This document shows, in pieces, positions 10,885 through 63,972 of a stretch of DNA of 64,000 bases. The translations under genes were made by a program, and so were the position numbers. Below the pieces are notes generated by a model, which was not told the DNA's origin, searched no databases, and saw nothing but the letters and a program-made list of their open reading frames with translations. Source of the stretch: Podarcis melisellensis (taxonomy: Eukaryota); the NCBI GenBank assembly GCA_964234715.1, contig OZ174276.1; one strand, 5' to 3'. The stretch's first letter is position 1; each line of letters starts with the position of its first letter.

Positions 10885-11105
10885 AAGTTGCCATTTCAAT
10901 CTTTGAAAAGATGCAAGCGCAAGAGATCCTCAGGAACCTGCGGCTTCCAGAGATTGAAGACTTCAGTCAGTTTTTCCGAAGTTTGCCAGCTGCTACCTTG
11001 GTTGGCATTGGTGCCTTTGCAGCTGTTGTTGCTTACTGGTTGGCCAGCCGGCCAAAAGCAGTGAAACCACCATGTGACCTCCTGATGCAATCAGAAGAAG
11101 TTGAG
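10885..11105 (+). CDS. ACSL6: ACSL6 exon 2 (acceptor at 10884; ATG of MQAQE at 10911; N-terminal transmembrane anchor)
   Basis: ttctgcag|AAGTTGCC...GTTGAG|gtgagt; (E)[22 protein letters not shown]...[16 protein letters not shown]...SEEVE. Confidence 0.95.
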
Positions 11106-29100: not shown

Positions 29101-31763
29101 ACTGATTGGTGCTTTACATGCACGGGGTGCTGCTAAGCTGTGAAAGATACACAACAGCAAATTTTCCAGAGATGCTTCAAGAGTGTCTGTTAAGAATTGA
29201 CCTACTTTCTTTTTTCTAATGATGTTATGACTGCACTATGCTTGATTTACCCGTCATATCCGGATACTATGAATGTGATACACGTTTATTATTGGTACCC
29301 AGTTCTTGTCTAAGTTTTCTGTATCCGCCCCCCTAGATACAAAACAGACTTCTAGATACAATTTATATATTTTTTGTGGAAGTTGATTCAACGTTCTTTC
29401 TTTTTCTTTAATGAAATCTGATATGGAAGGCAAGCATGTGTACATCATATTGCAACATTTGCCAGTAAAGAATTTTGGGGGGATGGTGGTGGGGCTGACT
29501 TCTGGTGAAATCTCGTCTATCTGGATAGACAATAGAGAAGGATCTGTATGTGTAGAAACCAGCCAATGATAACATTTATATTTACTGTTCTGCCCACTTC
29601 CACCTGTGACCCCACCCAATCCTGGAATGTGGCCCTCAGCAAGGACTGTGTCCCGTGGGCTGCCGAAGCCTGTACATTTCTTTGCTTTTTCACATCTTAG
29701 CTGTGTACCAGCATTGTATACCTGAGAATGGATTTGAAAGCAGGAAAAGGAGCTTGTGAACCAACATACTTGAAGTTGTAACGGCAACGTGAAAGAAGTC
29801 TGACTTCCACTCCCTAACATTTTTGTATGTGGGGCTGTTTATAAAATGATTTCTGATGAATCTTAGGTTGGTTTGACATGGAGATTTGCCATAATTGCCA
29901 CTTCATAAAACATTAATAAAAATAACAGCCAGCCACAATTAGCTCATTAACAGACTGGGAACTGCTCTGCAGCAGCCAGATGTTTCTATTCTGTTGTTAC
30001 AATATCCCCAATAATTCTATATAGCTGTGCCAAGCTAATTACACAATGGAAGCCCTTGGGATACCTTAATCTCTATACATACTTTTCAGTGATTTTGTTT
30101 TCCCTTAGAAGAGAACAGAAAGCATAATTCAGAGTGAATTGCAGCAGAAGAGCTTTATTGTTAACTTTTAGCAGTGGTATAGTTATGATTAATTCAAACA
30201 ATTAATTATACCGCTGGCATCTGCGGAGCCCTGTCTGCTTATGCCAGTGATAAATTTGGTCCCGCTTCCCTTTTAAGCTGTGCAATCTTTTCTCTCTCCC
30301 CACGCCCTGCCATTCTGCATTCTCTTAGATCTTCAGTCAAGCAGACACCCCACTGAAACGCTGGCTTCTGGAATTTGCTGCCAAGCGTAAAAAGGCAGAA
30401 GTTCAAAGTGGAATAATCAGAAATGACAGCCTGTGGGATAGACTATTCTTTAATAAAATACAGGTAAGGATCTGGAAAAAAATGGGCACTTGTGCAAGGA
30501 ACCCTTTACGAAAATGAAATTGTACATGAAACTAGAAAAATTACTAATGGGGGGGGGAGGCAACCTTTCCCAGGGAGCCTTCTTGCCCTGTAAAGGATTG
30601 GGTTTTGGCCCCAGCAGCCATTTTTATGGGTGAGGCCTGTGAATGGCATTGTTATTCAAATGAATGGAGACAAACCTTGGGCTGAGTGGGTCCCAGTCAC
30701 TGTTTGTCCCCTAGCAACAGTTTTACTGTCCTTCAAAGGAGCAGTAAACCAGGAAGTCTCTTTCAGTCTGGCTTTTAATCTAAACTGGAGAATCTGGATG
30801 CTCCCTGACTTTATTTTCAGGCATGAGCCACCGCACTTCCCTGTCTTTGCAACAGACAGAAGCAACTTGTTTAAGAGTCAACTAATCTTTCACTCTCTAT
30901 CGGCTGTTTAGTTTTATGCAAGTTCACAAGTACCTAAACTGTGAAAATCACAGGAAATGTTGCTATCAAAGTGACTAATTCAGGACTGCTGGAGTAAACA
31001 AAGAGACCCCAAATAGGCGCCATTCTTCTTATAGAATCCCAATCCTCTTACTGTGAAAATTCACAGACCAAAAGTGAAATTTAATGTAGCTTTAAGGAGA
31101 TTGTTCATCAGTGCAAATATTTCTGCTTACCTGATATAACAATCTCATTCCTGCTCCCCTGTGTGCTGTTCTGGGGTTACTTTCAAACCCCCAGAGCACA
31201 TCTGGGAGCAGGGCATGAGGCAAGAAATGAAGCCATTACTAGAAACACAAAAGGAAAGCTTGGACCAGTAAGAAGCAAGATCATATTCAGAGTCTATCAG
31301 AAGGTCTCAAATACATTAGTTAAGAGTTTTACTCAACAGTACTTGCTTCAACCAATTGTGTGTTCCTCCAGAAAAATGGTAATGATAAAAAATTAAAAGC
31401 AAGACACTAAAATACAAGGTTGTAGCCAGTTGTGGCTTTGCAGTAGTAGAAAATGCTTATGATTGTGTATGGCGGGGCATCCAATTTTCACCCATTGTTC
31501 CTACCTGCTACTCCTCTGTACCTTATCCCATGCTATTTGGAACAGCTTTGTAGGGATTGCAGTGGGTAGGGAAGGAATCCATGAAAACTGGATGTCATGG
31601 TTTGCCTGAGGGTACACTTTCTGCTAGTGCAAAACCATCACTGGATACAGACAATCCAGTTTTATTTGACATGAAAACAGAATACTCTACAGCCCATATT
31701 ATGCATTCAGAACTACGCTCCCTCCCCACCCCATTTCTCCCAGAACATCATTCACCTAGGCTG

Positions 31764-31805
<42 letters not shown>

Positions 31806-34800
31806 CAAGGTCAGGAATGTAGCTGTTTGCATGGTGAGGCCCTGGGCCCCGCAGTTCCATTAGATAATAAACATACAGACACAAATGTTTAAGTTAATGG
31901 GATAAAACAGGCCACAACTTTATTGGTTACAGAGGTGAGCAGCTTGGCTTAGGCATTGGGTGAAACCGGATTATATCCTGACTCCTGCACATCTGCAGGG
32001 AGTCTCATAAGGGTAAACCACTGGTAGGGGGAGCCCTATGATATACATCGATTAAGAGCACCCCCAGGGTCCCCGATGGGGTCAAGACATGGCTTTGGAC
32101 AGGATCCACACGCCCGGGTCCCTTTAACAGGATACCCTTAACGTGGAGGGGCAGGCAGAGGCAACAACCTCCCCTCCCACAAACAAGGCTTACCAAATGT
32201 CTAACCACCACTCAAGCCCTAAAGGCTCGCCGCCAACTTAAATGGCTAGTGGCCATGCCCCCGGCCAACCTGATTGGCCAGCTGGGGGGGCGTGATGCGG
32301 CTGGGAGTCCCTATGACTTGGGTGGCATCCCTCCACCCACAGCTGGGTTACTGGGAGGTCCTGGATGCACTCCTGCAACACTGTCTGCCCCCCCCCCCGG
32401 GAAAGGGAGTGGACTTCCAGCATGCAGTGTGATCTTCATAAATGTGGGAGAGGAAAGAGGTTTGGAAATATAGGCATAAACTATTCAACTAGATCTAACG
32501 GGTAGGCTGATCTTTGTTGTCCCTGAAAGCCCAGAGGATACTGTGCAAATATGTACAATAACTTCTTTATGCTACATGCTGTTTTTTCAAAGTTCTCTTT
32601 GATCAACAGGCAAGCCTGGGTGGCTGTGTTAGGATGATTGTAACAGGAGCCGCTCCTGCTTCCCCCACTGTTCTGGGCTTCCTTCGAGCAGCCCTGGGAT
32701 GTCAGGTATGTTGCACCTGTACATTTATCCTGTTGCACTTTTTATTTCCTAGCTAGAAGTTCTGCTACCATTAGGGGAAAGCTAGATTGTTAAAAATGAG
32801 CTGTGGTATTAACTAATAACACTGTGGGAACTAAACACATCCATAATAGAAATAGGGAGAGTTAAGTATTAGGACCATATAAAGAGCCATGTTTACGTAT
32901 AGCAAGTCCCTTGCAAAAGTAATAAGCTAATGGTAAAGATCTGATCAGAACTTGTGTCTAGATTTAAATTTACAGCTCAGATCAGGTGGGGGAGGTACTA
33001 TAGACAGATTGGGGCCAGATTTGTCTGCCTTCCAGATCTGTCTAAGGGGAATCCCCCTCCTTGGATGCCCCTGTGTTTCCTAGATACCATTGAAGACCTC
33101 CTATTTTAAGAAACAAGTTGGATGCACCCACCCTTCTTAAATGGGTGTTCAAGGTGGCAGGGATGCTGAGTAAGACAAACCCAGCTTGCAGTGTCTTTCC
33201 TTTTTCTTTAGCAGCAACCACCAACAGGCCTTTTCAGGGGTGGGCAGAGGTCTGTAGCACTAAACTTGACCAATAATTGGCTCATGCCATTCTCAGCCAG
33301 CTACTAGTGGTTTTCCTAGCTTGCAGTACGAGTTCCAAAGTGCATCCTCTTCAGCTGCTCCCAGAGTTCCTACAAAGGAGAGATTTCTCCCCCATCTTTA
33401 ATGTCTTTCTCCATCTCTAAATTCAGCAATCAGAAGCTATTATTGTACACAATTGTAATTTAGATTGTGTTCTTCCTGAGTCCCAACACTGGAGAGAAAA
33501 GTATTTATTGCTCATTTATTTATTTTTGGCCTTCAAATAAAATGGTGAAATTAGCATCATCTTGTTTAAATGATGCAGGCCTCTGAATACCTGTTCTGCC
33601 TCTGAATACCAGTTGCTGAGGATCGCAAGTAGGAGAATTCGTCTGTCCGCTTGTCCTGCTTGAAGGATTCCAACAGGCATCTGATTTGACTAGATGGAGC
33701 TTTGGTCTGACCCAGTAAAGTTGTTCTTATTTTCTTACATACTTTTGACAGGTATATGAAGGCTATGGTCAAACAGAATGCACAGCTGGCTGTACCTTCA
33801 CTACTCCAGGGGACTGGACATCAGGTAATAAACCAGGCAGGGTACTGAATCATCAATTAATCAATTGCCTTTTTACGCATCGTGAAATAATTCACAGATA
33901 AATAATAAAAACAGCTAAGAAGAATTGTAAAAACAATACATAAACCAAATAAAGTTAGCTGTGAAAACAGTACAAAATGAACATCAAAGACAGGGACCTT
34001 TTCATCCAGCTGGAAAAGCTTGTTGAAACAAATATGTCTACCATTTCCCCACCAGAAACTACAGATAGTGGGCACCTTTCATATCCCAAGAGAGATAAAT
34101 GTTCCAAAAACAGGAGCAGCCACACTGAAAACTCTGCTTTGAAATACTGTGGCTTCTGATATTTCAGAGATTTTGAGGATAAACTCCTGTAGAATGCAGT
34201 GACCTACTAGGTATATGAGGAATAAGGCAGTCCCTCAAGAAATTCTGTTTTAGAATGCAAGTTTAATTAGCTTATTTAAGCTTGAAAACAATTAGGTCAG
34301 AATCCTAAGATGCTATGTATGTGCGTGCAGGAGAATGACGTGTAATCGTGATATACTTTGCAGCTTTGGGCTCAGCGTTTTTCACTGCCAAAAAGGCAAG
34401 CAGCTTTAAAAACCAATCAGTGGTTTGTCCCTTTTCTCACTGAAACAACAGCTGTGCTCAGCCTAAACAAATGCTACTTACCAGTATGCGTATATCATTT
34501 CTTTAGATCCCAGCTTCTGTGACTTACGATAATCTGTGGCCCTGTTTGGATTTTGTTTCCTCCTTTGGATTGTCCTTAGAAAGAGATGAGCTCTGGGTTA
34601 TATGTGCTCTTTCCCCTCACTCCTAATTACCATTATTATTTTTCACTAGGCTAGCAATAAAACTGCATCTTCAGCAATGTTCAGATACTTTTATGATAAT
34701 AATCTGCTGTAGTCGTTTTACTTTTGTTTTTCTTTAATTTTTTTTTAAAAGACGAATGTCTCCTTGGCAAGAAGCCAGTGACTCGATTGCAGAGCAGTCT

Positions 34801-37800
34801 CCTTCACCAGAGAGCACTGTGAACTGCACTGCCACTTTCATAAATCTATGTCAAGGGATTAGATCCTGCACTGGGCAGGTTGTTGGCCTAGATGACCTTT
34901 ATGGTACCTTGCAACTTAAAAACTATCATCTCTCTGTGATTTGCAGGTCATGTTGGAGCACCTTTGCCCTGTAATTTAATCAAGCTGGTGGATGTTGAAG
35001 AACTAAATTACTTTTCTTCTAAAGGAGAAGGAGAGGTAACATGCACTCTTCCTGAACTCTTTGCTGTCTCACTTGTAGTTTAAAAAAGCCAATGAACCAT
35101 TTTCCAGAGACAAGATCTGTCACTCCTTTACAGGAGATAGGAGGGTGCAAAGATATATATATATTTATTGAGGACATGACCAACAAGCTCAGGTGCAGGA
35201 AGAGGTTGCTCTGGTGCTCAGAAAGGCAAGCGAGCAAGTCGGGCATTGGCTCTCATTCTTTCATTTCAGTACTGATGATCCAAACTTCATGTAGGGTAAT
35301 AGCAAGAATTCCTGGAACTGACAGGAGCTGGGAAGGGACAAGGTTCATGACATAACTCCTTAGAAGCCTAGTTTAGGATGAACAGCTAAAGGAAAATAGG
35401 CACAATGAAATATACACAGCATCCTTGGAGTAAGATAGTGGCAGTGGAGTTAGACATTCATCTTGTCTTGCTGGCCAGGATTAGTATTGTGGTGAGGCTG
35501 CTTTCTGATTACTGTGGACTATTATTTTGGATTTGCCTTGAAGGAATGCAGGAGCACAGTTTGGTTTTGAACAAAAAACGGTTCATCATTAAAAGATGGT
35601 TTCTTGGTTCTCTCTGGAATAATTTTTTTTGGGGGGGGGGGACAAAGAAGAGTGGCACCTGAAAGTCCAGCAAATAAGTTATAGCGCAAACTTTCATAGT
35701 CTTAGGGCATAAGTTATTGCGGACTATGAAAGCTTATACCATGAGGCATTTCTTAAGTCTTCTACAAGACTCTTTCTGCTGCAACAGTCTGATATGGCAA
35801 CACACATTTCACACCCAGCTGACGATGGTGTAAGCAAAATATGTGCATTTGAGAAAGAAACAGAAGAGCAACTGGAGTTTTGGAGACAGAGAAAGCTTGG
35901 AGCTGTAAGCTAACAGCAGCTGAGGAGGAAGAAAGGTGTCTTTCTCTGGCAATCTGGTGTGGGAGCAGTGGACTGGCTTTGTTGAATGTTAAGCTGTCTG
36001 CCTCCACCTATGCTTGACTTGCATATATTTATTTAATACATAATTTTATTTTGCAAACTGCAGTACAGTAAACAACAACAACAAAGCAAAAGGTTGCAGA
36101 TTTCTCATGCATTATTGTTACAGGATATAATTGGGGGGATAAGAATTAAATAATAATAATTAAAACAACTATCTGATATAGCCTCTCCAAAATACAGCAC
36201 AGGTAGCTGGATAAATTTGTAAATAAACCCAAATATTACAAAACATCCTAAATTGCAAACGATGCTTCTATCCTGCCTGTTGTGCATCTAACAGTATGTT
36301 GTGTTGGCTCAGGCTGGTCTTTACTCAGATAGAACAGAAAACCTTCACTCAGGAAGCATTACACATGTTCCAGTCTACTCATTGTTGGCACAGAGTCCTC
36401 ATAGGCAAACAGCTGTGCTTCTAGAACTCACAGGTCCAGCTTCCTGAAAGTCTCCCACCTTGTGTCAGTGGTGCCAACTGTATATTTGTGTGATTGGCCC
36501 TCCCCTCCCCAGAAAAGGGTTATGCCAGTATTCAGTGGCATGTGATTATAAAATAAGAGTTCCTTGTGTGGCTCAGTCTAACCCATAGGCTGAGGTTCTT
36601 GAAGACTTTTTGCCTATATATTCATCATTTGTGTGAAGTTATAACAATTGGCCTAAGTCTCTCTTTTTAAGTCTACCTTGCAGTGTACCAGCAAATCTAT
36701 CTCTTGCAGATTTGTGTGAAAGGTCCAAACGTTTTCAAGGGCTACCTGAAAGATAGAGAGAAAACCACGGAAGCTTTAGACAAGGATGGATGGCTTCATA
36801 CTGGGGATGTCGGGAAGTGGTTGCACGTATGTACTGAAATGCAAACTTTGCACACTAAGATTGCAGGTTTACAAGCCCCTCTGACCAAAGGAATAAGTGA
36901 ATTAGACATTGATGTGTACGTCAGATCATGAGTATAGTGGTGGATAAATATTACTACTGTGTGATGTGAGTATATGCCAGACCCACATCAGGGTTCAGCT
37001 CCAACATGGTTCCCTTCAGATTCCAACCCTCCCCTGGCCTTATTTTATGGGTTTATAGGCTACCTCATAGCAATTGTCACAACTTACTGGTGGATAAGGA
37101 ATTGGGTTGGGAAGTCTATGTGGGTGGGATGGAGGCTCCTCCCCTGCTCCATGGTCACAGGGTATCCCCTTAATGGGAGCCTGGGGGAAGTACTTCTTGT
37201 TCTGATACCTAGCTTGGGAGCTAATGGGCTACAGCACCCCAAATGGTGATTTTGGGGTTTGCCTGGATATGATACATACTGTGATATGTTTCTGTCCCTG
37301 TGGGGTGACCCATAACCTTGATCAACCCTGCCAGTCATCCACCAGCAGTTGGGCTGGTTGAGTTCAGGATACCCACTCAATGCCTACCCAAAACCTGCTG
37401 ACGCCTATAGTTGTAGCCTGTTTAAATCCCAACATAGCTGTTCTTTGTGTTGTTGTCATTATACCTAACAGCCTCCCCGCCCGTGGCTCTACTATACCTG
37501 GGTCTGCCACTTTCTGTTAGGTTTCATAGATATTTGACCTTAGCTTCTTTGGCCAGTCTGAGAAATTTGAAATCTGTTTGAATTCTGCTGCTCAAAAGGG
37601 ACCCAGTAGACTGGAGCTGAGTTACAGGCAAGGCGATCTCACTTTTCCCTAGCTCTATGTGATTACTTGCTGCTGCATAAGCGAGTCCCCACTTGCAGAC
37701 TTCCCTTCGGCATCTGATTGGCCCCTATGGGAGATAGGATGCTGGACTGAATTGGCCTTAGGCCTGATCCAGCAGACAGACTCTTCTTACATTCTTATGT

Positions 37801-40800
37801 TATTTTTTACTCACAGAATGGTACACTTAAAATAATTGATCGAAAAAAGCATATATTTAAACTGGCTCAGGGAGAATACATTGCACCAGAGAAAATTGAG
37901 AATATCTACATTCGCAGCGAGCCTGTTGCCCAGATATATGTGCATGGAGATAGTTTACAGGTAACGCTATCCATTTTCTAAACATTCCTTGAAATTTGGT
38001 CATGCCTTTTATACCATTTTGTTTTGTTTCCTGGGTTGGGGGGGTTGCGTTTAGGAACAGGCAAGGTGTCATGTTTATTCCGTTTAATAATGTTCAAAAT
38101 GGATACAAGATGTTGGTGTCTGTTACCTGCTGAGCAGGTAAGTTCAGCAGCTAGATACATACAGTAGTTTAATGAGAGGAGCACAGCATTTGCTCACTGA
38201 TGTCCCAGGCACGAGGCATTCTAGGACATGTAGCAAACTTTCTGGCGTAGTGGTCATTGATTGACCTGCATACTCTATAAAGTCTGTATAGATCAATAGG
38301 GAAACAACTGCATAAGCAGAGTCAAGCAACACACCCCACATGCAGATTTTGTAACATTTGGGGCCAGCCTCCTGATGGAACTAGAAGAGCTGAAGGACTA
38401 TGGAGGAGAAGTGGGAGTAACCTTACTGCAGAACTATTTACTGTATATGGAAGCCATTATCAAAAGTTAAGAGAACAGAGCTCTGCTCTGAACCTACACA
38501 CACACACAGAGTGCTCTGACTCTTGTGATAAGCAGAAGCTGCTGTATCATTGTTTGAGGAATGGGGGCAAAGGGCAAAGAACTTGACAAGCACTCTTATA
38601 TAGAAAGCACAGATAAGAGGGCACAGCAAAATTCAAGGGATCAAGAAGGGTTTGCTGTGTCACAAATACAGTCCCCAATTTTATCTGTATCGTTGCAGGC
38701 CTTCCTGGTGGGGATTGTTGCACCTGATGCTGAAATCATGCCAGCCTGGGCCAAGAAAAGAGGCTTTGATGGAACTTTTGCAGAGCTCTGTAAAAATGCG
38801 GTAAATTGCTTATGCACATGCTCCTGTGCAATTCAGTGCCAATTTGGGCTGTGTGTGCACAGACAAACATAGATTATAATTCTAATTGGTAGATCAGAAT
38901 TTGCCAGTGCACTGAAAGAGCCTTATGGCGAATGATGCAATATGATAAGCTGAAAGGCCAACTTCAATGTTACATTAAAAGCAGCCTTCCATATCCTGTT
39001 GCCCCCAAGATGTTTTGGACTCCCAACTCCCAGCAGCTCTAGCCAGCAAGGCCAATGGTCAGGGATGATGGGAACTGTAATCCAGAATATCAGGAGAGCA
39101 CCAAGATGGGAATGGCTGAATTAAAACAGTTCAGCTAATGTGTTTGGATCTGACTGTGACCTTTTCTTTAGGAAAAAAGCAGCTATAGGGGGCTCTGAAC
39201 TGGATCAGATCCACAGCACGGAAGGAGGGAGCTTAACTATGCCCTGTTTTCCTGCTAATAATAATGCCCCCAAAGGACATATTTACTGCTTTGGATAGTT
39301 TTCAAGAAAAGGGAAGAGGTGTTTTAATCCTGGTCAGGATCCCCCACAGCTTCTTATCATAAAGAAAGGCACAGCCAAGTCCAAAGCACAGTAGTTAAAA
39401 CTGCTTTTGACATAATGTGTAATTCTGGCTCTAAGTAGCTAGGTGATTACTGTGTTAAGAGACTGGGACATCTGTTAGAAAGATTCCATTAGATAAGCAA
39501 AGCTCTGTCCTATAACAGGAGCTAGTATAACATCTTGGGTTTTTTCCACTTTCTTTATCAGTACTGTTCCATTGCTACAAGATGACATCTATTTTTTTGC
39601 ACAGTGAGATATGCTTTTGTTTCATTTTGTTTTTTGGAGGCTTGGAATGTCTGAGCCAGCGCCAAATCATGTGATTTCTCTGCTGTTGCCTAGACTAGAT
39701 AAAGATTGCAGTAATGTTCCAGAAAGAAGACAGCAAAGCTACTAAAGAGCAGGTTTTATTTCTTCTATGGGTGTTCCAGCACATTTACCTTTGGTGGAAG
39801 CCATAAGCAAAGGACCATAGTTCAGTGGTGGACATATGTACTACCTGAAAAAAGGGGTCAAGATTCTCAACACTCCCTGGATGTTCCAGGAATTGAAAGA
39901 GCCCATGTCTGAAACCCTATAGAACTTCTATGAGTCAGTGTAGGCTATCCTGAACTAGATAGACAAATAGCCCAACTCATTATAAAGCAGTTCCTACGCT
40001 CCTATGTATTTGAATAATTAATTAATTCCCCACTCCTGTGTGACAAAGCCAGGTGGGCTACTACCACTTGAGTAAGGGGATGGAAATATGTAGAGCAGCT
40101 AGGAGTCAGCAGTAGCAAAAGTAAATCCTGGCAACATTCTTGGGATGTTCAAGAAATAAGGCTGTAATCCTATCCCTGCTTACCTGGGAGTAAGTTCCAT
40201 TGAACTCAGTAGAACTTACTTCTGAGTAGATGCCTACGCTATAATCCAGCGACTTGGTTATTAGAACACTAAGGAAGTAGACTGTAAGCACTTTCTCTTT
40301 AGATTGCCAGCTGATCAAGGCTGGGAACTGGTCTCTGTGCAAAATGCAATTCATATTGACAGCATTAGATAAATAACATTGAAAATGGCATCAGTGTAAG
40401 GTATAGGGAATGTTTTCTGTGGAATGGAATGGAATCTACTATTTTTGAACTGGCATTATAAGATACAGTTTCAGTCACTGAACTCCTTTGTACTTTAATT
40501 TTAAATGCAAAGAGGAAAGTGAGAGCTCTGAGCTCTGAGAACAAGTTCCAATACAACATGCCAGAATAAGAATTTAAGTCTTTCCCCTGCAAACATATGT
40601 TCATGCTTGGGAAATTTAAATCAAAGAGGTATTTCAGACACTTCTGCATGAAGACTACAGGACCAGAATTCCTTAAGGATGGGCAATGTTTTTCAAGCTG
40701 AGAGCCACATAACCTTCTGATCAATCTTGCAAGGGCCAAAATGGGTGGAGTAACAAATGTAATTTTTACCTTTTGTACAATAGGCTATTTTGTACTAACA

Positions 40801-41673
40801 CTCAAGCACCCTGCCTCTATCCTCCCCATAACAGAGTTCAAAGACACATTCCAGATGGGCGTATTTGGAGTGCAAAGCTTGGCATGTGAAGGGTATGACC
40901 TGAGGAGAATTTCAATGGCCAAAGAGGTCTGGGGGGCGGGGGACGACGACACACAATTCATCCCTCTGCCTGATATTTCCCATCCTTGTCCTACATAGTA
41001 TAATCACATTTCATCCTCTGTTTCTTTGAAAAGTTAATTGTCAATAAAGAGCCAAATAAATAATTATTTAAATATTGGAACATTATTTGAACAGGACTTC
41101 CTGGCTGTAAATGTTCTCATATGTAACAGGACTTCCTGGCTGTAAATGTTCTCATATGTTCTTACTTAGGAGCTCAAAAAAGCAATAATGGAAGATATGG
41201 TGCAGTTAGGGAAAGAGAGTGGACTTCATTCGTTTGAACAGGTAAATACTAAATACTGATGATAGCTTTTGATTACTAGATGCAGATGAGCTGCTTCTTT
41301 GTGATTGAATAGCAGGAATTTTAGCATGCATTATGTAAAAGCCCCAATGCCTCGCTTATGCTTTGTGGTTCAGTACTCAAATGTGTGTTTTTCTATGAAA
41401 TAAAACTATCCTTGTCTGTTTATGAATGCATGAAAGGTAATGTTAAAGAAGGTCTCTCTATGATAGATAACATGATAAAATATTTGAAACACCATTCCAT
41501 TCAAGCCAGAGCAGTATTGGAAAGTCAGCTTAATTACCATTCTTGTAGCTGACCTGGAAAATACAGCTGTTCTGTTTGTCCCCCATCCATGGACTAATCT
41601 CCTCCTGACGTAGGTATTTTTGTGGCAGACCTACAAACCTTCAATAAGGGAAGTTCAAAAATGGACATAATGT

Positions 41674-41754
<81 letters not shown>

Positions 41755-43560
41755 ATCTTTTAAGAAGTGTGATCTAAAACAAGGTCATGTTGTGATTCTA
41801 TTATTTTTAAAAACACAAATGTAACAGCTGTAACATTCGTATAATGACATAAATTTCTAAGCGTGCCTGCATTTGTGCACTAGATTTGGCAACAGCATAA
41901 TAAATGCACTTGCAGTGTCATAATGCATACACTAAACAAGAATAGAGACTATAGAAACTAATTCCACATAAAGCTTTCCTGCTTTTTCAAAAACTGGTCT
42001 ATAAAAAAATGTTGAGAACTGACTGTCTCTTAAAATTGCTTTTTTCTCCCATGCTGTAAACCTCCCTGTGATGAAATATACTAATCTATCAATTCATCTA
42101 ATATAATCCTTGGGGGGTATGGGGGGCACATATGCCTGTGTTCTCTGCAGCATTTCAGCACTGTGTAGTGAGGTGGGCGGGGGGAACCCTCCTAAATGAA
42201 TTCTTAAAATCACAAGCAGGAAACATGGGTACAAAGAAGATATTAAGGGCAAAGCCTTTCCCTCTATAGTCACTGCCAGCTGCTTGGGTAATGATTTTGG
42301 GTGTTCTTAGCTCAGGGAGGCAACAAAGAATCAAAAATATGCAAGTTGCGTTGTACCCAGTACTTCTTATAATGAGCTCCTGACACTTTAATGAACAAAT
42401 GCACATTTAAACATCATAGTTTCCTATGAGGTCTATATTCAGGATTAACACATGATTTAACACTGCTTTCTGCAACATAGAAGATGGATGGCTAATGTGT
42501 TACTCTTTAATTGTAAAAATGCAAATAAAACATAAATGATCCTTAAGTTGCTTCCAGAATTAATGCTTAGCACCAACACATTTTTAACAGCAGCAGCAAA
42601 GATTTTGCCAACATGAAACTTTGAAGTGTGCACTGCAGTTCATTTTCAGTGCTAAAGGTAGTCAAGTGTTTTTAAAGTTAAAATTTAATTTTCCCTAGCG
42701 CCAGTTATTTCTGCAGAAGGTGGAGAGAACTCAGCATGTCCTCATTGTGTCTCAATCCTAGAATCAAGCCTTTTAAGATTGTTTTTGATGCAGAAATGTA
42801 TTTTTAAAAGTCTGTTGATAAAATATACCTTGTGTCTGCCATTAAATGCCAAGTGATAACAGCAACAGCCAAATTTAGAATTTCTGTTCCAATGTCTCTG
42901 GGAGATATATACTAAAGCAACAGGGACAGAACCTCATCCATGCAGCAAGCTACCTCATTCTCAAATAAGCATGCGCAGGATTGCACACTAAATTTGTTCA
43001 CCTTTCAATAACAAGCCACGCAAATAAAAAGCAACAAAACTTCTAAATATCTAAATAGTCTGGGTTGTATTAAGGAGCCAGATAAACAAAAATACAGAGT
43101 GACTGCTTACTATAATTTATGCTGTAAAAGTCACATGCTTTGCCCTATAGGGGGGACCTTTTGTTCAAAAAGCCAGTGTATTGGGCAAAGCTAGGGACAT
43201 TATTGATGAATTGCTGCAACTAAAAGGCCGAATTTAAAAGTAGGCAGGTGTTAGCACTGAGCTATTACATCCTACATAGGAGTGGGTGTGCAGAATAATA
43301 CTTGGCAGAGTGACCAATGTGATATGTCTGGAACACAGCTATCAAATCAGCCGTTTCCTTTTATTCAACGTTAAAGTATATTTTTATAAACATGTTGACT
43401 TGTTTTCCCCCCCTCATAGGTTAAAGCTGTTTACATCTACCCCGAAATGTTCTCTGTACAAAATGGTTTGTTGACACCTACGTTAAAAGCTAGGAGACCG
43501 GAGCTGAGAGAATTTTTCAAGAAACAGATAGAAGAGCTTTATTCAAGCATCTCCATCTGA
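10911..43560 (+). CDS. ACSL6: Long-chain-fatty-acid--CoA ligase 6, spliced CDS: join(10911-11105,14523-14637,15571-15635,17453-17554,17651-17750,19324-19502,20079-20111,21122-21173,22963-23036,[25945-26022 OR 26086-26163],28099-28233,30329-30463,32610-32705,33752-33824,34947-35035,36710-36826,37817-37960,38699-38800,41170-41241,43420-43560); 2097 nt, 698 aa plus stop
   Basis: All introns GT-AG with consistent phases. Translation has the AMP-binding P-loop [19 protein letters not shown] and the FACS motif [26 protein letters not shown] and the gate pair KVIFPRQDD / SQWSPTFED are diagnostic of ACSL6 rather than ACSL1 or ACSL5 (recalled sequences). Confidence 0.97.
11800..12240 (-). mobile_element. 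L2/CR1-clade LINE reverse transcriptase fragment
   Basis: [16 protein letters not shown]...[16 protein letters not shown] resembles the RT motif QSGFRPGHSTETAL...LDLSAAFDTVDH. Confidence 0.8.
14523..14637 (+). CDS. ACSL6: ACSL6 exon 3
   Basis: ctgtag|GGC...TCTG|gtaagt; [38 protein letters not shown]. Confidence 0.95.
15571..15635 (+). CDS. ACSL6: ACSL6 exon 4
   Basis: ctttag|AAAAT...GAG|gtgagg; [22 protein letters not shown]. Confidence 0.95.
15797..16252 (-). mobile_element. Solo LTR (Gypsy-like)
   Basis: TG...CA termini, flanks TCTGG/TCTAG (5-bp target-site duplication with one mismatch), AATAAA on the minus strand near 15867, CpG-rich. Confidence 0.65.
16399..16424. repeat. (TG)n microsatellite
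   Basis: Direct reading. Confidence 0.95.
16716..17062 (+). mobile_element. Sauria SINE, near full length
   Basis: Same head, B box and body as 4134-4494. Confidence 0.9.
17209..17300 (+). mobile_element. 5'-truncated Sauria SINE
   Basis: gatgagtgccgcaacccc...gactggacctaatggtcaggggtccc duplicates about 16976-17055. Confidence 0.8.
17453..17554 (+). CDS. ACSL6: ACSL6 exon 5
   Basis: tttcag|GTT...GAG|gtgagc; [34 protein letters not shown]. Confidence 0.95.
17651..17750 (+). CDS. ACSL6: ACSL6 exon 6
   Basis: ttccag|TGG...ACAG|gtaaaa; [33 protein letters not shown]; follows a 96-nt intron. Confidence 0.95.
19324..19502 (+). CDS. ACSL6: ACSL6 exon 7
   Basis: gtttag|CTGAT...GAG|gtaagg; [14 protein letters not shown]...QAMQEVE. 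Confidence 0.95.
20079..20111 (+). CDS. ACSL6: ACSL6 exon 8 (33 nt)
   Basis: tttcag|GAC...GTA|gtgagt; [11 protein letters not shown]. Confidence 0.92.
20776..21055 (-). mobile_element. LTR-like fragment
   Basis: GC-rich insert with caggaac/caggg repeats and a minus-strand TATA-like ttttat; boundaries unclear. Confidence 0.35.
21122..21173 (+). CDS. ACSL6: ACSL6 exon 9 (first half of P-loop)
   Basis: ttctag|CCT...ACAG|gtaaac; [17 protein letters not shown]. Confidence 0.95.
22963..23036 (+). CDS. ACSL6: ACSL6 exon 10
   Basis: ctccag|GTAAC...GAG|gtgaat; [25 protein letters not shown]. Confidence 0.96.
25945..26022 (+). CDS. ACSL6: ACSL6 exon 11, F-gate variant (mutually exclusive)
   Basis: ctgcag|AAA...CAG|gtaaga; 78 nt; [26 protein letters not shown]. 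Confidence 0.95.
26086..26163 (+). CDS. ACSL6: ACSL6 exon 11, Y-gate variant (mutually exclusive)
   Basis: ttccag|AGT...CAG|gtaagg; 78 nt; [26 protein letters not shown]. Confidence 0.95.
26544..26679. mobile_element. Palindromic hAT MITE with perfect 8-bp target-site duplication; older copies near 19880, 22725, 38985, 45348, 48385, 50140, 53235, 61082 and 62846
   Basis: CAGGCATAGGCAAACT...AGTTTGCCTATGCCTG; GCCTGAGG at 26536-26543 and 26680-26687. Confidence 0.92.
28099..28233 (+). CDS. ACSL6: ACSL6 exon 12
   Basis: tcacag|TCC...AAG|gtaagc; [20 protein letters not shown]...RLLNRMYDK. Confidence 0.96.
30329..30463 (+). CDS. ACSL6: ACSL6 exon 13
   Basis: tcttag|ATC...CAG|gtaagg; [22 protein letters not shown]...LFFNKIQ. 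Confidence 0.96.
31767..31804. repeat. (TG)n microsatellite
   Basis: Direct reading. Confidence 0.95.
31801..32430 (-). mobile_element. LTR-like or DIRS-like repeat; related element at about 36975-37510 on +
   Basis: Minus strand AATAAAGTTGTGGCCTGTTTTATCC vs ATAGTTGTAGCCTGTTTAAATCC near 37407; both end TGCCAC. Confidence 0.45.
32610..32705 (+). CDS. ACSL6: ACSL6 exon 14
   Basis: caacag|GCA...CAG|gtatgt; [32 protein letters not shown]. Confidence 0.96.
33752..33824 (+). CDS. ACSL6: ACSL6 exon 15
   Basis: tgacag|GTA...TCAG|gtaata; [24 protein letters not shown]. Confidence 0.96.
34947..35035 (+). CDS. ACSL6: ACSL6 exon 16
   Basis: ttgcag|GTCAT...GAG|gtaaca; [30 protein letters not shown]. 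Confidence 0.96.
36710..36826 (+). CDS. ACSL6: ACSL6 exon 17
   Basis: ttgcag|ATT...CAC|gtatgt; [15 protein letters not shown]...[14 protein letters not shown]. Confidence 0.95.
37817..37960 (+). CDS. ACSL6: ACSL6 exon 18
   Basis: tcacag|AAT...CAG|gtaacg; [48 protein letters not shown]. Confidence 0.96.
38699..38800 (+). CDS. ACSL6: ACSL6 exon 19
   Basis: ttgcag|GCC...GCG|gtaaat; [34 protein letters not shown]. Confidence 0.95.
41090..41159. repeat. Perfect 35-bp tandem duplication
   Basis: AACAGGACTTCCTGGCTGTAAATGTTCTCATATGT at 41090-41124 and 41125-41159. Confidence 0.95.
41170..41241 (+). CDS. ACSL6: ACSL6 exon 20
   Basis: acttag|GAG...CAG|gtaaat; [24 protein letters not shown]. Confidence 0.95.
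41681..41754. repeat. Compound (CT)n(CA)n microsatellite
   Basis: Direct reading. Confidence 0.95.
43420..43560 (+). CDS. ACSL6: ACSL6 last coding exon, TGA at 43558-43560
   Basis: tcatag|GTT...; [46 protein letters not shown]. Confidence 0.96.
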   Translation, partial: VKAVYIYPEMFSVQNGLLTPTLKARRPELREFFKKQIEELYSSISI

Positions 43561-55156: not shown

Positions 55157-55159
<3 letters not shown>

Positions 55160-55191: not shown

Positions 55192-55192
<1 letters not shown>

Positions 55193-55800: not shown

Positions 55801-56079
55801 TATTTGATATTTGCTGGGATGGGCATGTATGTTGCCATGGGCAACCTCCAAGGACTCTGACTCTTCCTGGTTCTTTTATTTGCATGGGACTAATTATTTC
55901 TTGGTCCCAACAAATGCCCTTGTGAAGAAACTACTACTAGGCAAACAGCACCCCCTTTCCCCAAAACAAGCAAAACACACTCAGACAAAACCATACACAT
56001 CAAACCACACACAGTAGGCCAAGCACAATGCCTGTCCAATAATCTAAAACATAAAGGAAAGCACACACAACCTTACCAT

Positions 56080-56580
56080 GCAGTGACAGTTTTCTTTTTT
56101 ACTAGTGACAGTTCTCTCCTTCTAAAAAATAGTATTAGTGTTTTTCTCTTATCCCTCCCAAATTTAAGACGGTTTAGCTGGGAGGCAAAGCTAACTCGTG
56201 GCCTCCACCTGCCCCACCCTCTTCCTTTCCTAATAAATTTGGGAATAATCCTAGAGGTATTCTGGGAAGAAGAAAGGAAAATGGCCGAACGGTTGAAAGC
56301 TGACTTATGCCTCCTACAGGTAAAAATAGAAGGGGCTCGAGGCCTGCAGGGGACCCCAGACTTAAACTATTTATCAACACTGGTGCAGGTATGGATCAGG
56401 TCCTGTGACCTGCGTTTTGGTTTGACTCCTTTATTTCTGCCACGCCAGAAGCCTCAGGACCTCCTGGCTCTTTGCTGCCATTTGTGTTCTCTCAGAATGG
56501 GGCTGAATTTGAAACCTGAGGCAGTTCTCAGTAGGGGAAGGGGAATACCCTGAGGCGAGACAGCTGCCTCCTCTCAGTTG
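56080..56580 (+). promoter_or_regulatory. Candidate promoter or first exon region of the MEIKIN-like gene
   Basis: Non-repetitive, locally CpG-enriched; MYB-type site AACGGTTG (56288-56295); donors CAG|GTAAAA (56319) and CAG|GTATGG (56388). Confidence 0.35.
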
Positions 56581-57528
56581 CTCAGGCAGTATTTGTATTA
56601 TTTAATCCAAACGTTTCATTTTCTTTTCGCTTGGTTGCATGATCTTTTGCCCATAGCACTGCAGGCAGTCACAGTTAAAGGCATATCCACGCTGAAACAA
56701 AAAGTGGGTTTGGAGGTAGCTTGCAGCCTGAGGAACCTTGGGAAGTGTAGTTCTGTGAGGGAAGCAGGGCTGCTTGCCTGACAGAAAATAGTCAGCACCT
56801 TCAAAAAGTTATAATTCACAGAGTGGGCAGGGAACAGTAGCAACAGTTGACAGTGATTTTTAGGTATGTGTTGCAGAAAGGGTATAAGTGTGGTGAGTAG
56901 GAGGTGGTAACATTCAGCAACAAAATCCTATCATAACTAGATTTAAACCAGCTTAATAGTCAAACGATAGTTTGAGGGATGGAAATGCTTGGGATCTTTA
57001 ACCAATAACTCAGTCTTGTTTACTAATCTACAGCTCCCAGGATTCTTTGTGGATTCATGGGAGAGAAAACTGCCAAAGGTTTATATAGTAATTTGAGTGT
57101 AGGGTGTTTGGCGCTTGAAATTATATTCTAGCCAATGTTTGTTTTTTGAAGTGTGTGTGTGTGTTTAATTTGGTGGGGGGATATTTGGGTTTAGAATTGA
57201 ACATACTCTCTGGCACACTGCGCTCCAGTGAAAACATTTCTGTTCTGTGGGGCTGACAGCCCCTTTATACAGTGAGTTAATATAGGATAATATGGGGGTA
57301 AATATGGATTTGTTTAATCCTTCAGGGAGTAAACCACAAGAGCTTAAAGAAGTTTCAAGAAAGCCAGCAATCCACCAATAAGACTCTTCCCTTCCCTAAA
57401 TGTCATGGTTTTGGTTTTTCCTGGCATCTATGCTTGGATTATATTTTACTTGTCAGAATCTCTTTTCTTAGTATTGCCTCTTACCGCTTTGTAGGCAGCA
57501 TTGCTGTGAGGAAAAGCAAATAAAGAGG

Positions 57529-57631
57529 ATGGACTGGGTGAAATTGCGTTCCTATTCCCGGAAGAGGCGGGCTCAACAGAATGTCCATTGTGCATCTCCT
57601 ATCCCAGCTGCGGCAGCATCTGCTGCTGTAG
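57529..57631 (+). CDS. MEIKIN: MEIKIN-like coding exon A (exon probably starts at 57495; alternative phase-1 donor at 57712)
   Basis: MDWVKLRSYSRKRRAQQNVHCASPIPAAAASAAV vs recalled human MWPLRVYTRKKREGQR; acceptor tttgtag|57495; donor GTAG|gtgaaa; syntenic position downstream of ACSL6. Confidence 0.75.
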
Positions 57632-59138
57632 GTGAAAGGAATACTAAAGCCAAAGGGAGTCGGCTGCGCCTAGATCTGCTTTCTGGACCTCGGCAGGAAC
57701 CTCATGTCAGAAGTAATCATTCATGCAACTACCTTGTCCTTCCCCATCACATTCCTGTTTGTCTGGATTAATTACAATATTTGTTGTGTCTTTGCGTAGT
57801 GGCACAAAGGCCCTAACTACTCTACTGTGTACTGTCTAAAAATGTGTAGAATGTACTCTTAATGTAGTCACTTTATGTACTCTTAATGTAGTCACTCTTA
57901 ATGGAAACACTTTATTGGTGAAATTGGTAGTGGGGAAGAGGGTGAGGTGTTTGTGAATGTGTTGGGGGCTTATCTCACCTGCTATGTCTTGATGAGTATT
58001 GTAGAAAGCTGCTTGGCCTGCTAAATGCATTACATGGGACACAGAGATGGGGCTTATTGCTTTCCTCAGTTTGGTTTGTATTCATAGTTTTTGTCACAGT
58101 TGCTCAGACCCTGACAACACTGAGCTCATTACTCCAGTATGTGCTCCTTCTGCAACACTGAATGTCAACAGTGAACTCGGTCCTGATGTCAGTCTTTACC
58201 ATCCCAGCTAAAAATCACCAGCTGCAAATACAAATCAACTGTCCCCAGGGCACACAAGGATGAATCCTACCCTTTGAGCCACCTCACAGTGGAATCCTGT
58301 CTTAGGATGCAAGCACCATTGAACCTAGTGAAACTTACTTCTCGGTAAACAGGCATAAGATTGGGTCTTGAGCCAGTTGCTGTTTTGCTTTTTCCAAGGT
58401 TCTCACTGTTTTTGAAAGCAACACTCCTATCACCTGGTGTTTTTCCAAGCTGTTGAATCCCCACCCTCTCAGGCCACTTTCTAAATACATACCGTACATA
58501 CGGACTTTATGCAAACAGAACACTGATGTTGCCATTCAAGAGTGGTGGTTCATCCAAGTCTCCTATTTTGGAAATTTTTGATGGTGTTCACAGTTATTTC
58601 CCCCACACCTGCAATGGTTAGAAACAGCCATTTTTATAAATTGTGTGTGGGTGCCACTGACAACAACACCTGTTCTCATCTGTCGCCAAAATAATTTGCC
58701 CCTCTTGAAATGCAAAGAGCAGGTGGTAAATCTGAATATAGTTATGCACACTTAAGTCAGTGGTGGACTTTGGTCTTTCAGATTTCAGTGTCGCCTTGTG
58801 GGCAGCCAAAATTCAGCACCCCCCTTCCTCTCACCACCTGTTTGGCTCAATTCAGTACATCATAGTTGTGGTTCCCCCTATTGCGGTAGAACCAGTCATG
58901 CTGCCCTAAATCCACCTCTGCTTAAATCCTGTTGTTCCCAGGGGGATTTGCAGATTATTCTCAAATATTTTTGAAGTAAAGTGTTGCTTCATTGTGACAT
59001 AGCCCTCAGTCACATGACAAAAAGATCCTTGTTAGGGGGAGGAGGATAAAGACCAAGTATGGCTGCAGTCTTACCATATGGAGTATTTACCTGTGTGAAG
59101 AATAGGTGGAAATGTAACCTGTTGATGATTATTCTACC

Positions 59139-59285
59139 CAGTGCTTTTTTCTTGGGGGACGCAGGGGGACGCATACCCCTAAACATTTTGTGAATCTAGG
59201 TTTAGCCTCATTGAGGGGCAGTATTTCAATATGAGTAGGAAAATGAGAGCACCCCTAAACTTTTTTTTAAAGAAAAAAAGCACTG
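59139..59285. mobile_element. hAT MITE with perfect 8-bp target-site duplication
   Basis: CAGTGCTTTTTT...AAAAAAAGCACTG; ATTCTACC at 59131-59138 and 59286-59293. Confidence 0.9.
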
Positions 59286-60957
59286 ATTCTACCTAAACAG
59301 CTCTTAAAACTGTGCAGCAAAAGCCTTTGATCCAGATAGGCTTGGTTTACCAAGTGCATTAAATTGGACTGTCAGTAGGGGGAGCTTTTTGCCTTCTGAT
59401 ATTGTACTAAGTCTTGGGAGCATCAAGATTTGCCTTAATTTCTTTTTTAAAGAAACTGATAGCAAAACCTGATGAAAATTAAAAGGTGCAAAGGAGTTGT
59501 TCTTGCAAATCTCTGGAGATTGAGAGCTTAACATGTGTCTTGATTTCACAGTTGTACTAGGACCTTCCTTTTGAGAGCAGAAATTCCATTATAGTGCAAC
59601 TCTGAGGTTTTCTTTTGCTCATTCTTTGTTGACTTGCTAGAGTTGTGTTGTCCGTAGCCGATACACAAACGAAACAAATGTGGAGTAATCTACTGACCTT
59701 GAAGAGAATCTGTTCAGGGTGGGTTAACATGCTTTTTAATGCACCCAACTGTATGTGCACATGTCTTTGCTTTGTTTGCATGCCAAACTATGGTGTATCA
59801 GGGCTGTGCAGACTCCTGAAGAGGATCTCCCAGCTGCTTTACTTCCCCCAAGTCATTTTACTCCTGTACTGTGATGAGTTTGGGTTGGCTTAGCTTGTTG
59901 TACAAACCTAGGTTCATGGTTAAGCTCTTTCCTTGTTTACCATGAGCTGCAACCAAGAACAAACCATTCAGTTACTGTGACATATGAACTAGTCCTGCAT
60001 ATATTCCCATACATTCCTAGGCAGCCGCACCAATTGCAGAGTGAGGAATGGCAGGCCAGCCTAGGCAAACTGTTTAATGGAGCATTCCAATAAATGATCT
60101 CGCAGTGAGGTTTAACAGAAGGGTAAGTAGGCCATTCACCCAGTGTTTAGCAATCTGCTGGGTGAAGTGTTTGCTGCCCTCCATTAAATGCAATTGCAGC
60201 AGGGAAGGGTGTTTCACCAAGCAGTTTAGCAAGTTGCACTTTGAAGGCCCTCTTCATTAAACCTCTCTTCAGCCATGTTTGGTAATCTGATGGGTAGATG
60301 GGAGCTTGCATCCAACACACCATATCCTTCAACCCTTGCCCCCGAGGTTTGAAAGCCCCATGGGTCACTTGAAGTCCCAACAATCAGGGCTTCAAAGGGA
60401 AACATTGCCTGGTGTCACTATGATGTCAGGTGGGCAGCATGGAGGTCGGGGACGGACTATGGGGTTTATGGGTGAAGTTTAAAGAATGGGGAGTTAGCCC
60501 AGGGGGTTGGTGAGCAGGGGCAGAACCCCTTGTGTGTGTAAGTGTGTGTGTATGCATCTATGGAAATGTAAGTTGAGTGGCTAATATACACTCAAAGAAA
60601 ATGTGCACATAATCCATGAAGAAGAAACTGTGTACATTCCCTGTTCAATATAAATAATCTCAAACAATCATGGAGGAATGTGCATATCTCGGTTTGAATT
60701 TTGCACATACTCGGGGCACCAGAAATAATTACATTGAAGCCCTTCACTCAGCACCTGTATACAAGTTGGGTGAATGCCAAACAACTGTGACGTCTTAACA
60801 CAAAGAGATGATTCTTACTCTCTCTTTACAACAGAGCAAACACTTTGGGTAAATGTAGGACTTTAGGTTAATATCAATTTATACAGTTTATACAATATTT
60901 GTTCTGTTGGATCATAATCCTGTGTTTGGCTAAACATTCGCTTTTTTCTCCCTGTAG

Positions 60958-61048
60958 GACAAATTGGAAATGCCTTTAAAAAAGCATTGCCCAAAATTCA
61001 AGAAGCCTCTGGGGTGACCCAGATGGACTGTCTTTCAGTGGAACAAAG
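60958..61048 (+). CDS. MEIKIN: MEIKIN-like coding exon B (phase 1 to 2)
   Basis: cttttttctccctgtag|GA...CAAAG|gtatag; (G)QIGNAFKKALPKIQEASGVTQMDCLSVEQ; LPKIQE vs recalled human LSKIAE. Confidence 0.75.
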
Positions 61049-61468
61049 GTATAGATTCCAGTTATTCTATTATTGGATCTGGGGGAAGGTCTTGAGCACT
61101 TGAGGCCCCATAGATGTTGTTGGACTACAAATCCCATCAACTCTGACAATTGGCTATGCTGATTGCTTGGAGTCCAACAACTTCTGGAAAGCACCAAGTT
61201 CCACACCACCAGTCTAGAAACTGTCAATATGATGATGCAATTCAGCTTTAATTGTATTTATAGGCGTTATGGCCAGGACAGGAAGGACTTGCCTTGTTTT
61301 GAGCAACATCCCCAGAGCAATAATAATGCCAATTTCTGTTCTCAATGTGTTGGTTTAAGTTCAAATTAAAAGAAATCATTCTTCTCAGAAATTCCAGATA
61401 TCAGAGTTGGTTTGAAATTGCCTATGAAAAATACAGACCCATATTTGTGCTGTATCCCCCCCCCATAG

Positions 61469-61547
61469 CACTGAATTAAATGAAAATGAAAACAGAAGCA
61501 TGGAGGTGAATAAAAGTATCAATAAAATGGGCACTGCTGTATTAAAG
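61469..61547 (+). CDS. MEIKIN: MEIKIN-like coding exon C (phase 2 to 0)
   Basis: ccccatag|C...AAG|gtatgt; (S)TELNENENRSMEVNKSINKMGTAVLK; ENRSME vs recalled human ENRSSE. Confidence 0.72.
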
Positions 61548-62541
61548 GTATGTATTTAATTGTTAAACCTCTTAAATCCCAACAAATCTATGTACTACTG
61601 GTAGGGTAAAAACGAAAGACTGCTGCACCTTCAGAGTCCAGCCAATCAAAATACATATACAGTATTTTGTATGCAGCCAGTGGTGTGTCATGGAGCTGGT
61701 TTGTACATCACACTAAGCCAAAATCACAATTAAGCCATGCTAGCTCCTAGGCAGCATGGTAAGTGGTCAGGGATGATGGGAGTTATAATTCAAAATATAT
61801 GGAAAGCACCAGGTTGTTTCTGTATGTATTCTGTGGTTCTGACTTTAAAGTGGGGGCAAATCCATCTCTCTGAGGTACGTGGAAATATCAGGGTTTGCAG
61901 TAATCACCAGCATAATTAGTGTACCAGCCTCTCTGATTGCTGGGAGAATTTTAGTGTGGAGGAATATTAGAAGTCATACTGTTTCAAGTGGTTGGTGTGG
62001 AACAGATGAATTGTCATAAAGACCTATGAATATTGTCCAGGTAAGTTCATGGCTATGCTCTATTCACATTGACTTGGATAGTGGCTGGAAATGTGCATCA
62101 ATCACAATGAAATTTATACAAGTTGACAATACCACTATAGAGGTTCAGTGCCCAGGAAATAACCACCATATGGGTTCAGCTTTAAATTATTCTCTCTGTC
62201 ATGTTAGTCTCCACACAGAACCTCTGATCTTAACAGAGACTGTGCTTGGAAGAAATTCTGGGGCTTTGTGGTGAATGAGAAATTCTCCCATTCTGCTTGA
62301 TGACCTTCTGCAGATGAACAATTTACATAATTTAAAATTGCTTCCATGTGGCCATTGATAATACATTTCAAATCCAAGAGTTGCTCTGATCAATGTTAAG
62401 GAATATTTTGTTAATGACAAAACTGTGCAGAACTGTTTCTTTCTGATAAATTATTTTCATGAATTTTGTATGGTCATAAGGGAAATCACAGTTTTATCTA
62501 CGTCATACCTTGTCATCTCCATCTTTCACTGTTGTTCTTAG

Positions 62542-62602
62542 GATTCTTTGCATTTAAGCTCTGCAAGTAAAGAGAGTGCGAGATATAGTGAAACTACATC
62601 AG
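62542..62602 (+). CDS. MEIKIN: MEIKIN-like coding exon D (phase 0 to 1, 61 nt)
   Basis: gttcttag|GAT...TCAG|gtgagt; DSLHLSSASKESARYSETTS(G) vs recalled human ...NSELVSG. Confidence 0.75.
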
Positions 62603-63972
62603 GTGAGTATGCTTAAGCATACTGGATCAGGAACTGTATTCTTCTAAATATTATTCCAAGTTCCCTAATGTGACTAGTCTTCATGTTAATATTTTAGTTC
62701 CCCCAACCCAATTTTAATTCCCCCAACCCAACTCTGTGGCCAGTGCTGAAGCTTTCCTCAGGAGCAATACATATCACTAGTGTTTCTTGTTCAGCCTTCT
62801 ACATAAGAAGAAGAAGGGCAGGGGGAAAATGAATTATTGGGTGAACAGGAGTGAATAACCTTTGGCCCTTCAGATGTTGCTGAATTACAACTCCCATAAT
62901 CCCTGAGCACTTGGACTGCTGGAAGTTGTAGTTCAGCAACCTCTGGAGGGCCACAGGTTCTTCACCTCTGATCTAGAAATACCAGTGGGTGTTCTAGATA
63001 GCTTTGCTGAATGCTTGGGCTTCAAGTTGGTGCTAGCAGCATTGGTTTTAGGTCATGTACTTGGTTATGTATTATAACTAGAGATTTGCAGACCTTTAAA
63101 AAAAACACAGAAAAACGTTTTTCCAGTTTTTTCCTATTTCCGAAAAATTGGAGGAAAGGTTCTCTTCCCCCCACTATTTTTTCTTGGGGGGGGGGGGAAT
63201 TCCAGGCCTTCACATCACTAATTATAACAGACTTCTAAAAATTCAAGTAGATTTTGAGCACCAGTCTGTAGACCAGGATATAACTTTTAATGCCTTGCGG
63301 ATCTGTATAGCCCAAATATGTGGATAATAACTTAATATTCATTCCCATCAACAATCCTTTTAATTGACTGCTCACAATGGCTGATGTCACCTAAGTCCTA
63401 GTCTTATTTCCACCCTAATCATATTGTGCACTTTGGGTCATTTGGTCCGCTGCCCATCTGATGAAGAAAAGGGATCGCCAGTTACTTTGTTGAAATCCTC
63501 AATATTCTTATTATATTATAAACCTGTTCTGTTCAGTTTAATTAACCATTTTAAACCATGGCACTACATAGAAGTGGTGCTGTTTATCATTTCCAGGATA
63601 CCTACAGTATTTCTTTTATATAGAATAAATATATTACTGCTTATGATGGAAGCTGAAAACATTGCATGTATACTGAAACAAGTGCAGAGGTTTGAGTATT
63701 GGACTAGGAGACTATGGTTCAAATGCGCTTTCAGCCATGAAACTCACTGGGTTACTTTGGCCCAGTTGCCATCTTTCAATCAAACCTCCCTCACAGGGTT
63801 ATTGTGAGGGTAAAAGAGGGATGGAAAGAACCATGTGGATGTATGTCACCTGGAGCTCCTTGGAGGAAATTTAGGACATGTAATATAATAATAAATGAAA
63901 ACTAATCCAATTGAACCTATTACTGTTGCTGTTCTCCATCCTTCTCTCATGTGGCCTGCCTTCTGTTCACAG

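Follow-up and report, generated by a model that had tools for sequence, protein, structure and literature searches.

Introduction

The DNA of Podarcis melisellensis considered here, 64,000 nucleotides of contig OZ174276.1 (assembly GCA_964234715.1) and referred to below as the window, raises the question of whether a series of short open stretches at 57495-62602 belongs to a gene and, if so, to which one. A reading of the letters alone (the original prediction) had placed here four exons of a divergent squamate orthologue of MEIKIN, the meiosis-specific kinetochore protein, hidden downstream of ACSL6. The analysis described below leaves little room for doubt that 57495-62602 on the plus strand is the 5′ part of a MEIKIN gene, encoding residues 1-138 of about 430. 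The exon structure, the orthology, the synteny and the splicing into transcripts of close relatives were observed directly. The kind of gene is already known: RefSeq and Ensembl carry it under its name in congeners, and the same holds for dozens of further reptiles and birds.

Exon structure and transcripts

Four stretches of the region are open in the frames given in Table 1, each flanked by AG and GT. The first, 57529-57630, translates as MDWVKLRSYS...SAAV, 60957-61046 as GQIGNAF...SVEQ, 61470-61547 as TELNENENRS...AVLK, and 62542-62601 as DSLHLSSASKESARYSETTS. As was pointed out from the start, exon 1 is the only one that appears as a sizeable open reading frame (ORF; 57529-57771, 80 amino acids).

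No sequencing run recorded as RNA was found for the region, and contigs from four runs guessed to be RNA (X1 to X4) were compared with 57450-63449. X2 and X4 are two samples of one organism (B) from a single study, and X1 is from organism A. The four runs contain 5-7% of the sampled words, which is about the fraction of the 5.1 kb that the four exons occupy. A single long contig came from each of X2 and X4 (975 and 1511 letters), covering 57488/57493-57712, 60958-61046 and 61467-61545 and then joining at 62540; the longer one continues for about 1 kb 3′ of exon 4. The joints in these contigs, all of the GT..AG type, are 57712>60958; 61046>61467, or 61048>61469 when the cut is moved by +2, which is also present in X1; and 61545>62540, or 61547>62542 after the same shift. 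The contigs of X1 and X3 end at 57711. Between the exons the depth in X2 and X4 is zero, high-copy repeats excepted. Cover of the exons only, with GT..AG joints, is the pattern expected of spliced RNA. The contigs differ from the window at a few letters per exon and are thus those of near relatives, not of the source animal itself.

By these joints exons 2, 3 and 4 had been placed exactly to the base, and the phases of the four exons, which chain 1-2-0-1 without a stop, are kept in the contig-supported model. The donor of exon 1 had to be replaced. The exon had been ended at 57631; in the contigs it ends at 57712, and the GT at 57632 is used by no contig and by no annotated relative. The donor in use, GT 57713, lies 81 bases past 57632 and gives a coding part of 184 bases, or 61 codons and 1 base. 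The phase of exon 1 is unchanged by this correction, and therefore the downstream frame holds. There are 27 additional residues (GERNTKAKGSRLRLDLLSGPRQEPHV...), the codon split between exons 1 and 2 becomes a+ga (aga, R) rather than g+ga (gga, G), and the four exons joined encode 138 stop-free codons instead of 111. Both the protein alignment and tblastn show conservation of this added part among squamates (..DLLSxPRQEP..).

It is improbable that the shorter exon 1 is a real minor isoform made alongside the longer one: although the GT at 57632 is usable (TAG/gtgaaagg) and in the same phase, and although contigs drop rare variants, the joint 57631>60958 is absent from the contigs of all four runs, no annotated isoform in P. 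muralis or any other squamate omits those 27 residues in this way, and the part that would be skipped is conserved as protein. The longer exon 1, ending at 57712, is the form used in what follows.

The contigs of X2, X3 and X4 begin to match at 57488-57493 and carry 17-198 extra 5′ letters that fall nowhere on 57450-57492. These letters, taken with the AG acceptor at 57493-57494, require a further MEIKIN exon upstream of 57450. N-terminal extensions are annotated in some relatives (Hemicordylus isoform X1 and Tiliqua). The alternative first exon of the P. muralis Ensembl model (MWSNLLTLKRICSG), which is encoded at 59675-59720 (+) within MEIKIN intron 1, was considered and set aside, there being no contig depth at 59650-59849.

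The contigs of organism A have T at 57611, C at 57635 and G at 57643. These are the letters of P. muralis, to which, or to a close relation of it, organism A may therefore belong. The set in organism B is another, with C at 57619, G at 57642 and A at 61013. The introns contain repeats, at 59139-59285, 61050-61249, 61650-61849 and 62850-63049, onto which hundreds of contigs fall in all four runs. Summed depth over them rises as far as the thousands, and copies are often falsely joined to one another. These repeats resemble short interspersed nuclear elements (SINE-like), with the core ...ggactacaa(a/c)tcccat..., and occur on both strands.

Table 1. Coding exons of MEIKIN in the window, with the number of residues identical to those of three congeners, followed by the upstream gene
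Feature	Position	Strand	Boundaries and evidence	P. lilfordi	P. raffonei	P. muralis
5′ part of first coding exon, untranslated or possibly coding	57495..57528	+	acceptor AG 57493-57494; no in-frame stop before the ATG
MEIKIN coding exon 1	57529..57712	+	ATG, 61 codons + 1 base; phase 1 out; donor GT 57713	58/61	56/61	57-58/61
MEIKIN coding exon 2	60958..61048	+	phase 1 in, 2 out; contains LPKIQE and VTQMDC; joints on both sides	29/29	29/29	27/29
MEIKIN coding exon 3	61469..61547	+	phase 2 in, 0 out; joints on both sides	26/26	26/26	25/26
MEIKIN coding exon 4	62542..62602	+	phase 0 in, 1 out; donor GT 62603; joint 61547>62542	19/20	19/20	18-19/20
Upstream long-chain acyl-CoA synthetase gene, coding span	10911..43560	+	ACSL-type ORF exon peptides; stop 43558-43560

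Identity of the encoded protein

All similarity searches were run exon by exon. The peptide of exon 1 (57529-57711, 61 amino acids) was compared by phmmer with 1.84 billion representative proteins at E<=0.001, and nine matches were obtained. Seven of these are to N-terminal residues 1-60, with E values from 6.5e-16 to 2.7e-07, and lie at the N-terminus of the matched protein or after a short N-terminal extension. Six of the seven, from Hemicordylus (the best, at 6.5e-16), Python, Tiliqua, Eublepharis, Sphaerodactylus and Phrynocephalus, are proteins of 230-435 amino acids named ‘meiosis-specific kinetochore protein’ by NCBI or UniProt; the seventh is an unnamed assembly fragment of 69 amino acids. 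The remaining two matches (1114 and 1384 amino acids, in 15-19 stretches) were set aside as low-complexity similarity confined to the alanine/serine-rich part of exon 1.

The original prediction had suggested TBLASTN and profile searches as a check, and both point the same way. When squamate MEIKINs are searched by tblastn against the window, their matches begin at 57529, 60960, 61470 and 62542, one for each exon and in the right order; the first 140 residues of the relatives fall on these exons, and nothing else notable was found. A protein alignment gives the same picture. A profile built from eight relatives matched 211 proteins, the closest of which is the Podarcis cluster. All 120 of the matches listed carry the precomputed Pfam assignment PF27928 (‘Meikin’), and nearly all of these are named MEIKIN; among them are about 30 squamates, turtles, crocodilians and more than 60 bird clusters, and no mammalian sequence is in that list. 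Neither the peptides of the four exons nor the complete MEIKINs of Podarcis and Python had a match in a Pfam scan, and since the copy of Pfam scanned was without PF27928, this result says nothing on identity.

Comparison with congeners

Three congeners provide full-length proteins for comparison: P. muralis (RefSeq XP_028573837; Ensembl/UniProt A0A670J0F1, ‘Meiotic kinetochore factor’), P. raffonei (XP_053224584) and P. lilfordi (CAI5766610). The window, which carries only the first 4 coding exons of Podarcis MEIKIN, agrees with them in exon borders, in phase and in splice context, and is 92-97% identical over residues 1-138. Its exons align to residues 1-61, 63-91, 93-118 and 119-138. The two positions left between them, 62 (R) and 92 (S), coincide exactly with the codons that the contig-supported model splits across introns. 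There are 4-9 residue differences in the 136 positions compared, and none of the three proteins is identical to the window, which therefore derives from a different species or population. The Podarcis cluster contains no protein identical to its exons; a model for the source genome itself is thus either missing from the proteins searched or has not been annotated.

At the DNA level the window from 47678 to 64000 is collinear, at 93-96% identity, with positions 1-17260 of the P. muralis MEIKIN gene taken with 10 kb flanks, where the coding range is 10001-28303. Exons 1-4 of P. muralis have the same lengths and splice contexts, including the context of the exon 4 donor. Exon 5 of P. muralis (GMTLPTGVSHFLL...YSSPEIFR), at 17470-17610 of that locus, maps about 210-350 bases beyond the last base of the window. 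It was not found in 62603-64000 either by motif search or by tblastn with eight relatives, because its position is just beyond the end of the window. Identity to P. muralis is 97.1% in the exons and 93-96% in the DNA around them, and 9 of the 12 codons that differ alter the residue, as had been expected of a fast-evolving protein. On this comparison the MEIKIN exons encode a constrained yet fast-changing disordered protein.

The exon-wise match to annotated squamate MEIKINs, the collinearity with P. muralis and the spliced transcripts bear out the proposal of a true orthologue. Some points weigh on the other side. The runs, taken to be RNA by guess, belong to related species and have coded tissue labels, and they do not show expression to be germline-specific. 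The relatives are linked to PF27928 by precomputed tables rather than by a scan of the exons themselves, and it is through names in databases, together with this precomputed family, that they are tied to the mammalian protein. A start other than the ATG at 57529 may also be used, the frame being open back to 57495. Finally, the window holds only 138 of about 430 codons, and the 300 codons past exon 4 lie beyond it.

This last point would suit a decaying or truncated MEIKIN pseudogene in the source genome, with the first four exons intact and the rest lost or broken, and residue changes in 9 of the 12 codons that differ from P. muralis are what relaxed selection would produce. The stretch is nonetheless stop-free and keeps all of its splice sites, its exons are more conserved than its introns, and collinearity with P. 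muralis extends to the end of the window. MEIKIN is, moreover, generally fast-evolving, and the same pattern of substitution is seen between species with annotated full genes. A pseudogene is thus very improbable, and the reading as the 5′ part of a MEIKIN gene is retained. Any 5 kb of vertebrate DNA will commonly contain short stop-free stretches bordered by AG and GT, exon 1 alone is visible as a sizeable ORF and the donor first proposed for it was itself a chance site, but the notion of a chance chain of such stretches in intergenic DNA, with no gene at all, is negligible and has already been refuted by the identical borders in spliced contigs of two species, by peptide matches to annotated proteins with E values down to 6.5e-16 and by 95-100% identity in congeners.

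Neighbouring genes

The order ACSL6, MEIKIN, FNIP1 had been expected from the human genome, and it is also that of cattle, in which the genes run CSF2, IL3, ACSL6, MEIKIN, FNIP1 (PMC13185250). In the window, the ATG of MEIKIN is preceded on the same strand by an ACSL-type gene whose end lies 14 kb away and in which Pfam detects AMP-binding fragments, at 22911 and at 28105. A sequence search of PDB with one of its exons gave no match. From the human protein, from its position and from the cattle gene order, we take this gene to be ACSL6 and not a paralogue such as ACSL1. On the downstream side, FNIP1 (FNIP_N, FNIP_M and FNIP_C) follows MEIKIN in the collinear P. muralis locus, beginning 9.4 kb further on and on the same strand. 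MEIKIN therefore occupies its conserved position after an ACSL-type gene and, in P. muralis, before FNIP1, all on one strand.

Two adjacent and similar ACSL exon candidates are found within one ORF listing at 25876-26175 (+). They resemble the mutually exclusive Phe/Tyr ‘gate’ exons of ACSL6. A run of 133 N, either a gap or masked sequence, is present at 9379-9511.

Motifs and presumed function

We infer the function of lizard MEIKIN from mammalian work. Human MEIKIN has 373 amino acids and is cut by separase after ELFR (151-154), with the assistance of S149. The resulting N-terminal fragment, residues 1-154 (N-Meikin), does not bind PLK1, and the C-terminal fragment binds PLK1 via phospho-sites and CENP-C via its C-terminus (bioRxiv 10.1101/2020.11.29.402537). 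By homology, the lizard protein would sit on CENP-C at meiosis I kinetochores, and the PLK1 recruited there would hold sister kinetochores together and help to protect centromeric cohesin. The 138 residues in the window would correspond to most of the disordered N-terminal fragment, N-Meikin in the human protein, which separase would remove at anaphase I as in mammals. Exons past base 64000 would then encode the site of cleavage, the phospho-motifs that bind PLK1 and the C-terminal CENP-C-binding region. The separase-type motif SPExxR was not found in 62603-64000; it is encoded by exon 5 in P. muralis and is present in 125 of 125 sauropsid relatives checked. A conserved C-terminal block (..NPPEICCIIKASP..) in the proteins of relatives is likewise encoded outside the window.

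Within exon 2, the sequence LPKIQE (60987-61004) fits the pattern LxxIxE, by which proteins dock to PP2A-B56. LxxIxE occurs at this site in 119 of the 125 sauropsid MEIKINs, rising to 123 when I, V or L is allowed at the fourth position, and the [LMF]xx[ILV]xE sequences are mostly LPKIKE or LPKIQE. A review published in 2020 had already remarked that Meikin carries an LxxIxE motif and had called for tests (PMC7072534). The depth of conservation is the sole addition made here to that remark. It is conceivable, although rather doubtful, that LPxIxE is a working PP2A-B56 docking site on the fragment that separase removes. If it were, MEIKIN would deliver PP2A-B56 as well as PLK1 to the kinetochores of meiosis I and drop the phosphatase arm at anaphase I.

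The sequence RSYSRKRR in exon 1 (57547-57570) raises the question of PDS5 binding through a YSR motif. YSx[KR] is found near the N-terminus in 32 of 37 squamate MEIKINs, in 4 of 24 from turtles and crocodilians, and in none of 64 from birds. Since it is rare in the second group and absent from the third, YSRK(R) is not family-wide, and on these counts a PDS5-binding role throughout the family looks unlikely.

Significance

The result matters little beyond annotation, to which it contributes a corrected 5′ MEIKIN model of 138 codons in four exons, with a further exon upstream. The supposition that the gene is hidden is not borne out: RefSeq or Ensembl name MEIKIN in P. muralis, P. raffonei and about 30 other squamates, and the Pfam family PF27928 exists. 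The idea that it is left uncharacterised applies only to some submitter annotations, such as the ‘Uncharacterized protein’ of P. lilfordi and the ‘hypothetical protein’ of Phrynosoma, Phrynocephalus and Naja, for which transfer of the name is a small practical gain. The locus also illustrates that real genes with short exons can be found from raw sequence, here with one donor error. For work on MEIKIN's N-terminal fragment, the conservation of LPxIxE and SPExxR across sauropsids is a useful lead.

Comparison with known systems

In the literature the functional counterparts of MEIKIN are Moa1 of Schizosaccharomyces pombe and Spo13 of Saccharomyces cerevisiae, which act at the kinetochore specifically in meiosis I and are bound to Polo kinase. 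Their likeness to MEIKIN is an analogy taken from those papers, not from sequence. The genes of human and mouse MEIKIN (Kim et al. 2015; Maier et al., bioRxiv 10.1101/2020.11.29.402537) share the position of the Podarcis gene in the ACSL6-FNIP1 interval (cattle order, PMC13185250), and the proteins belong to the same length class of 373-434 amino acids. The N-terminal part of human MEIKIN binds neither PLK1 nor CENP-C, and the portion of the gene in the window is correspondingly without the experimentally defined binding regions. In full-length Podarcis MEIKIN the sequence SSPEIFR lies about 150-180 residues in, and its counterpart in the human protein is S149 with ELFR at 151-154.

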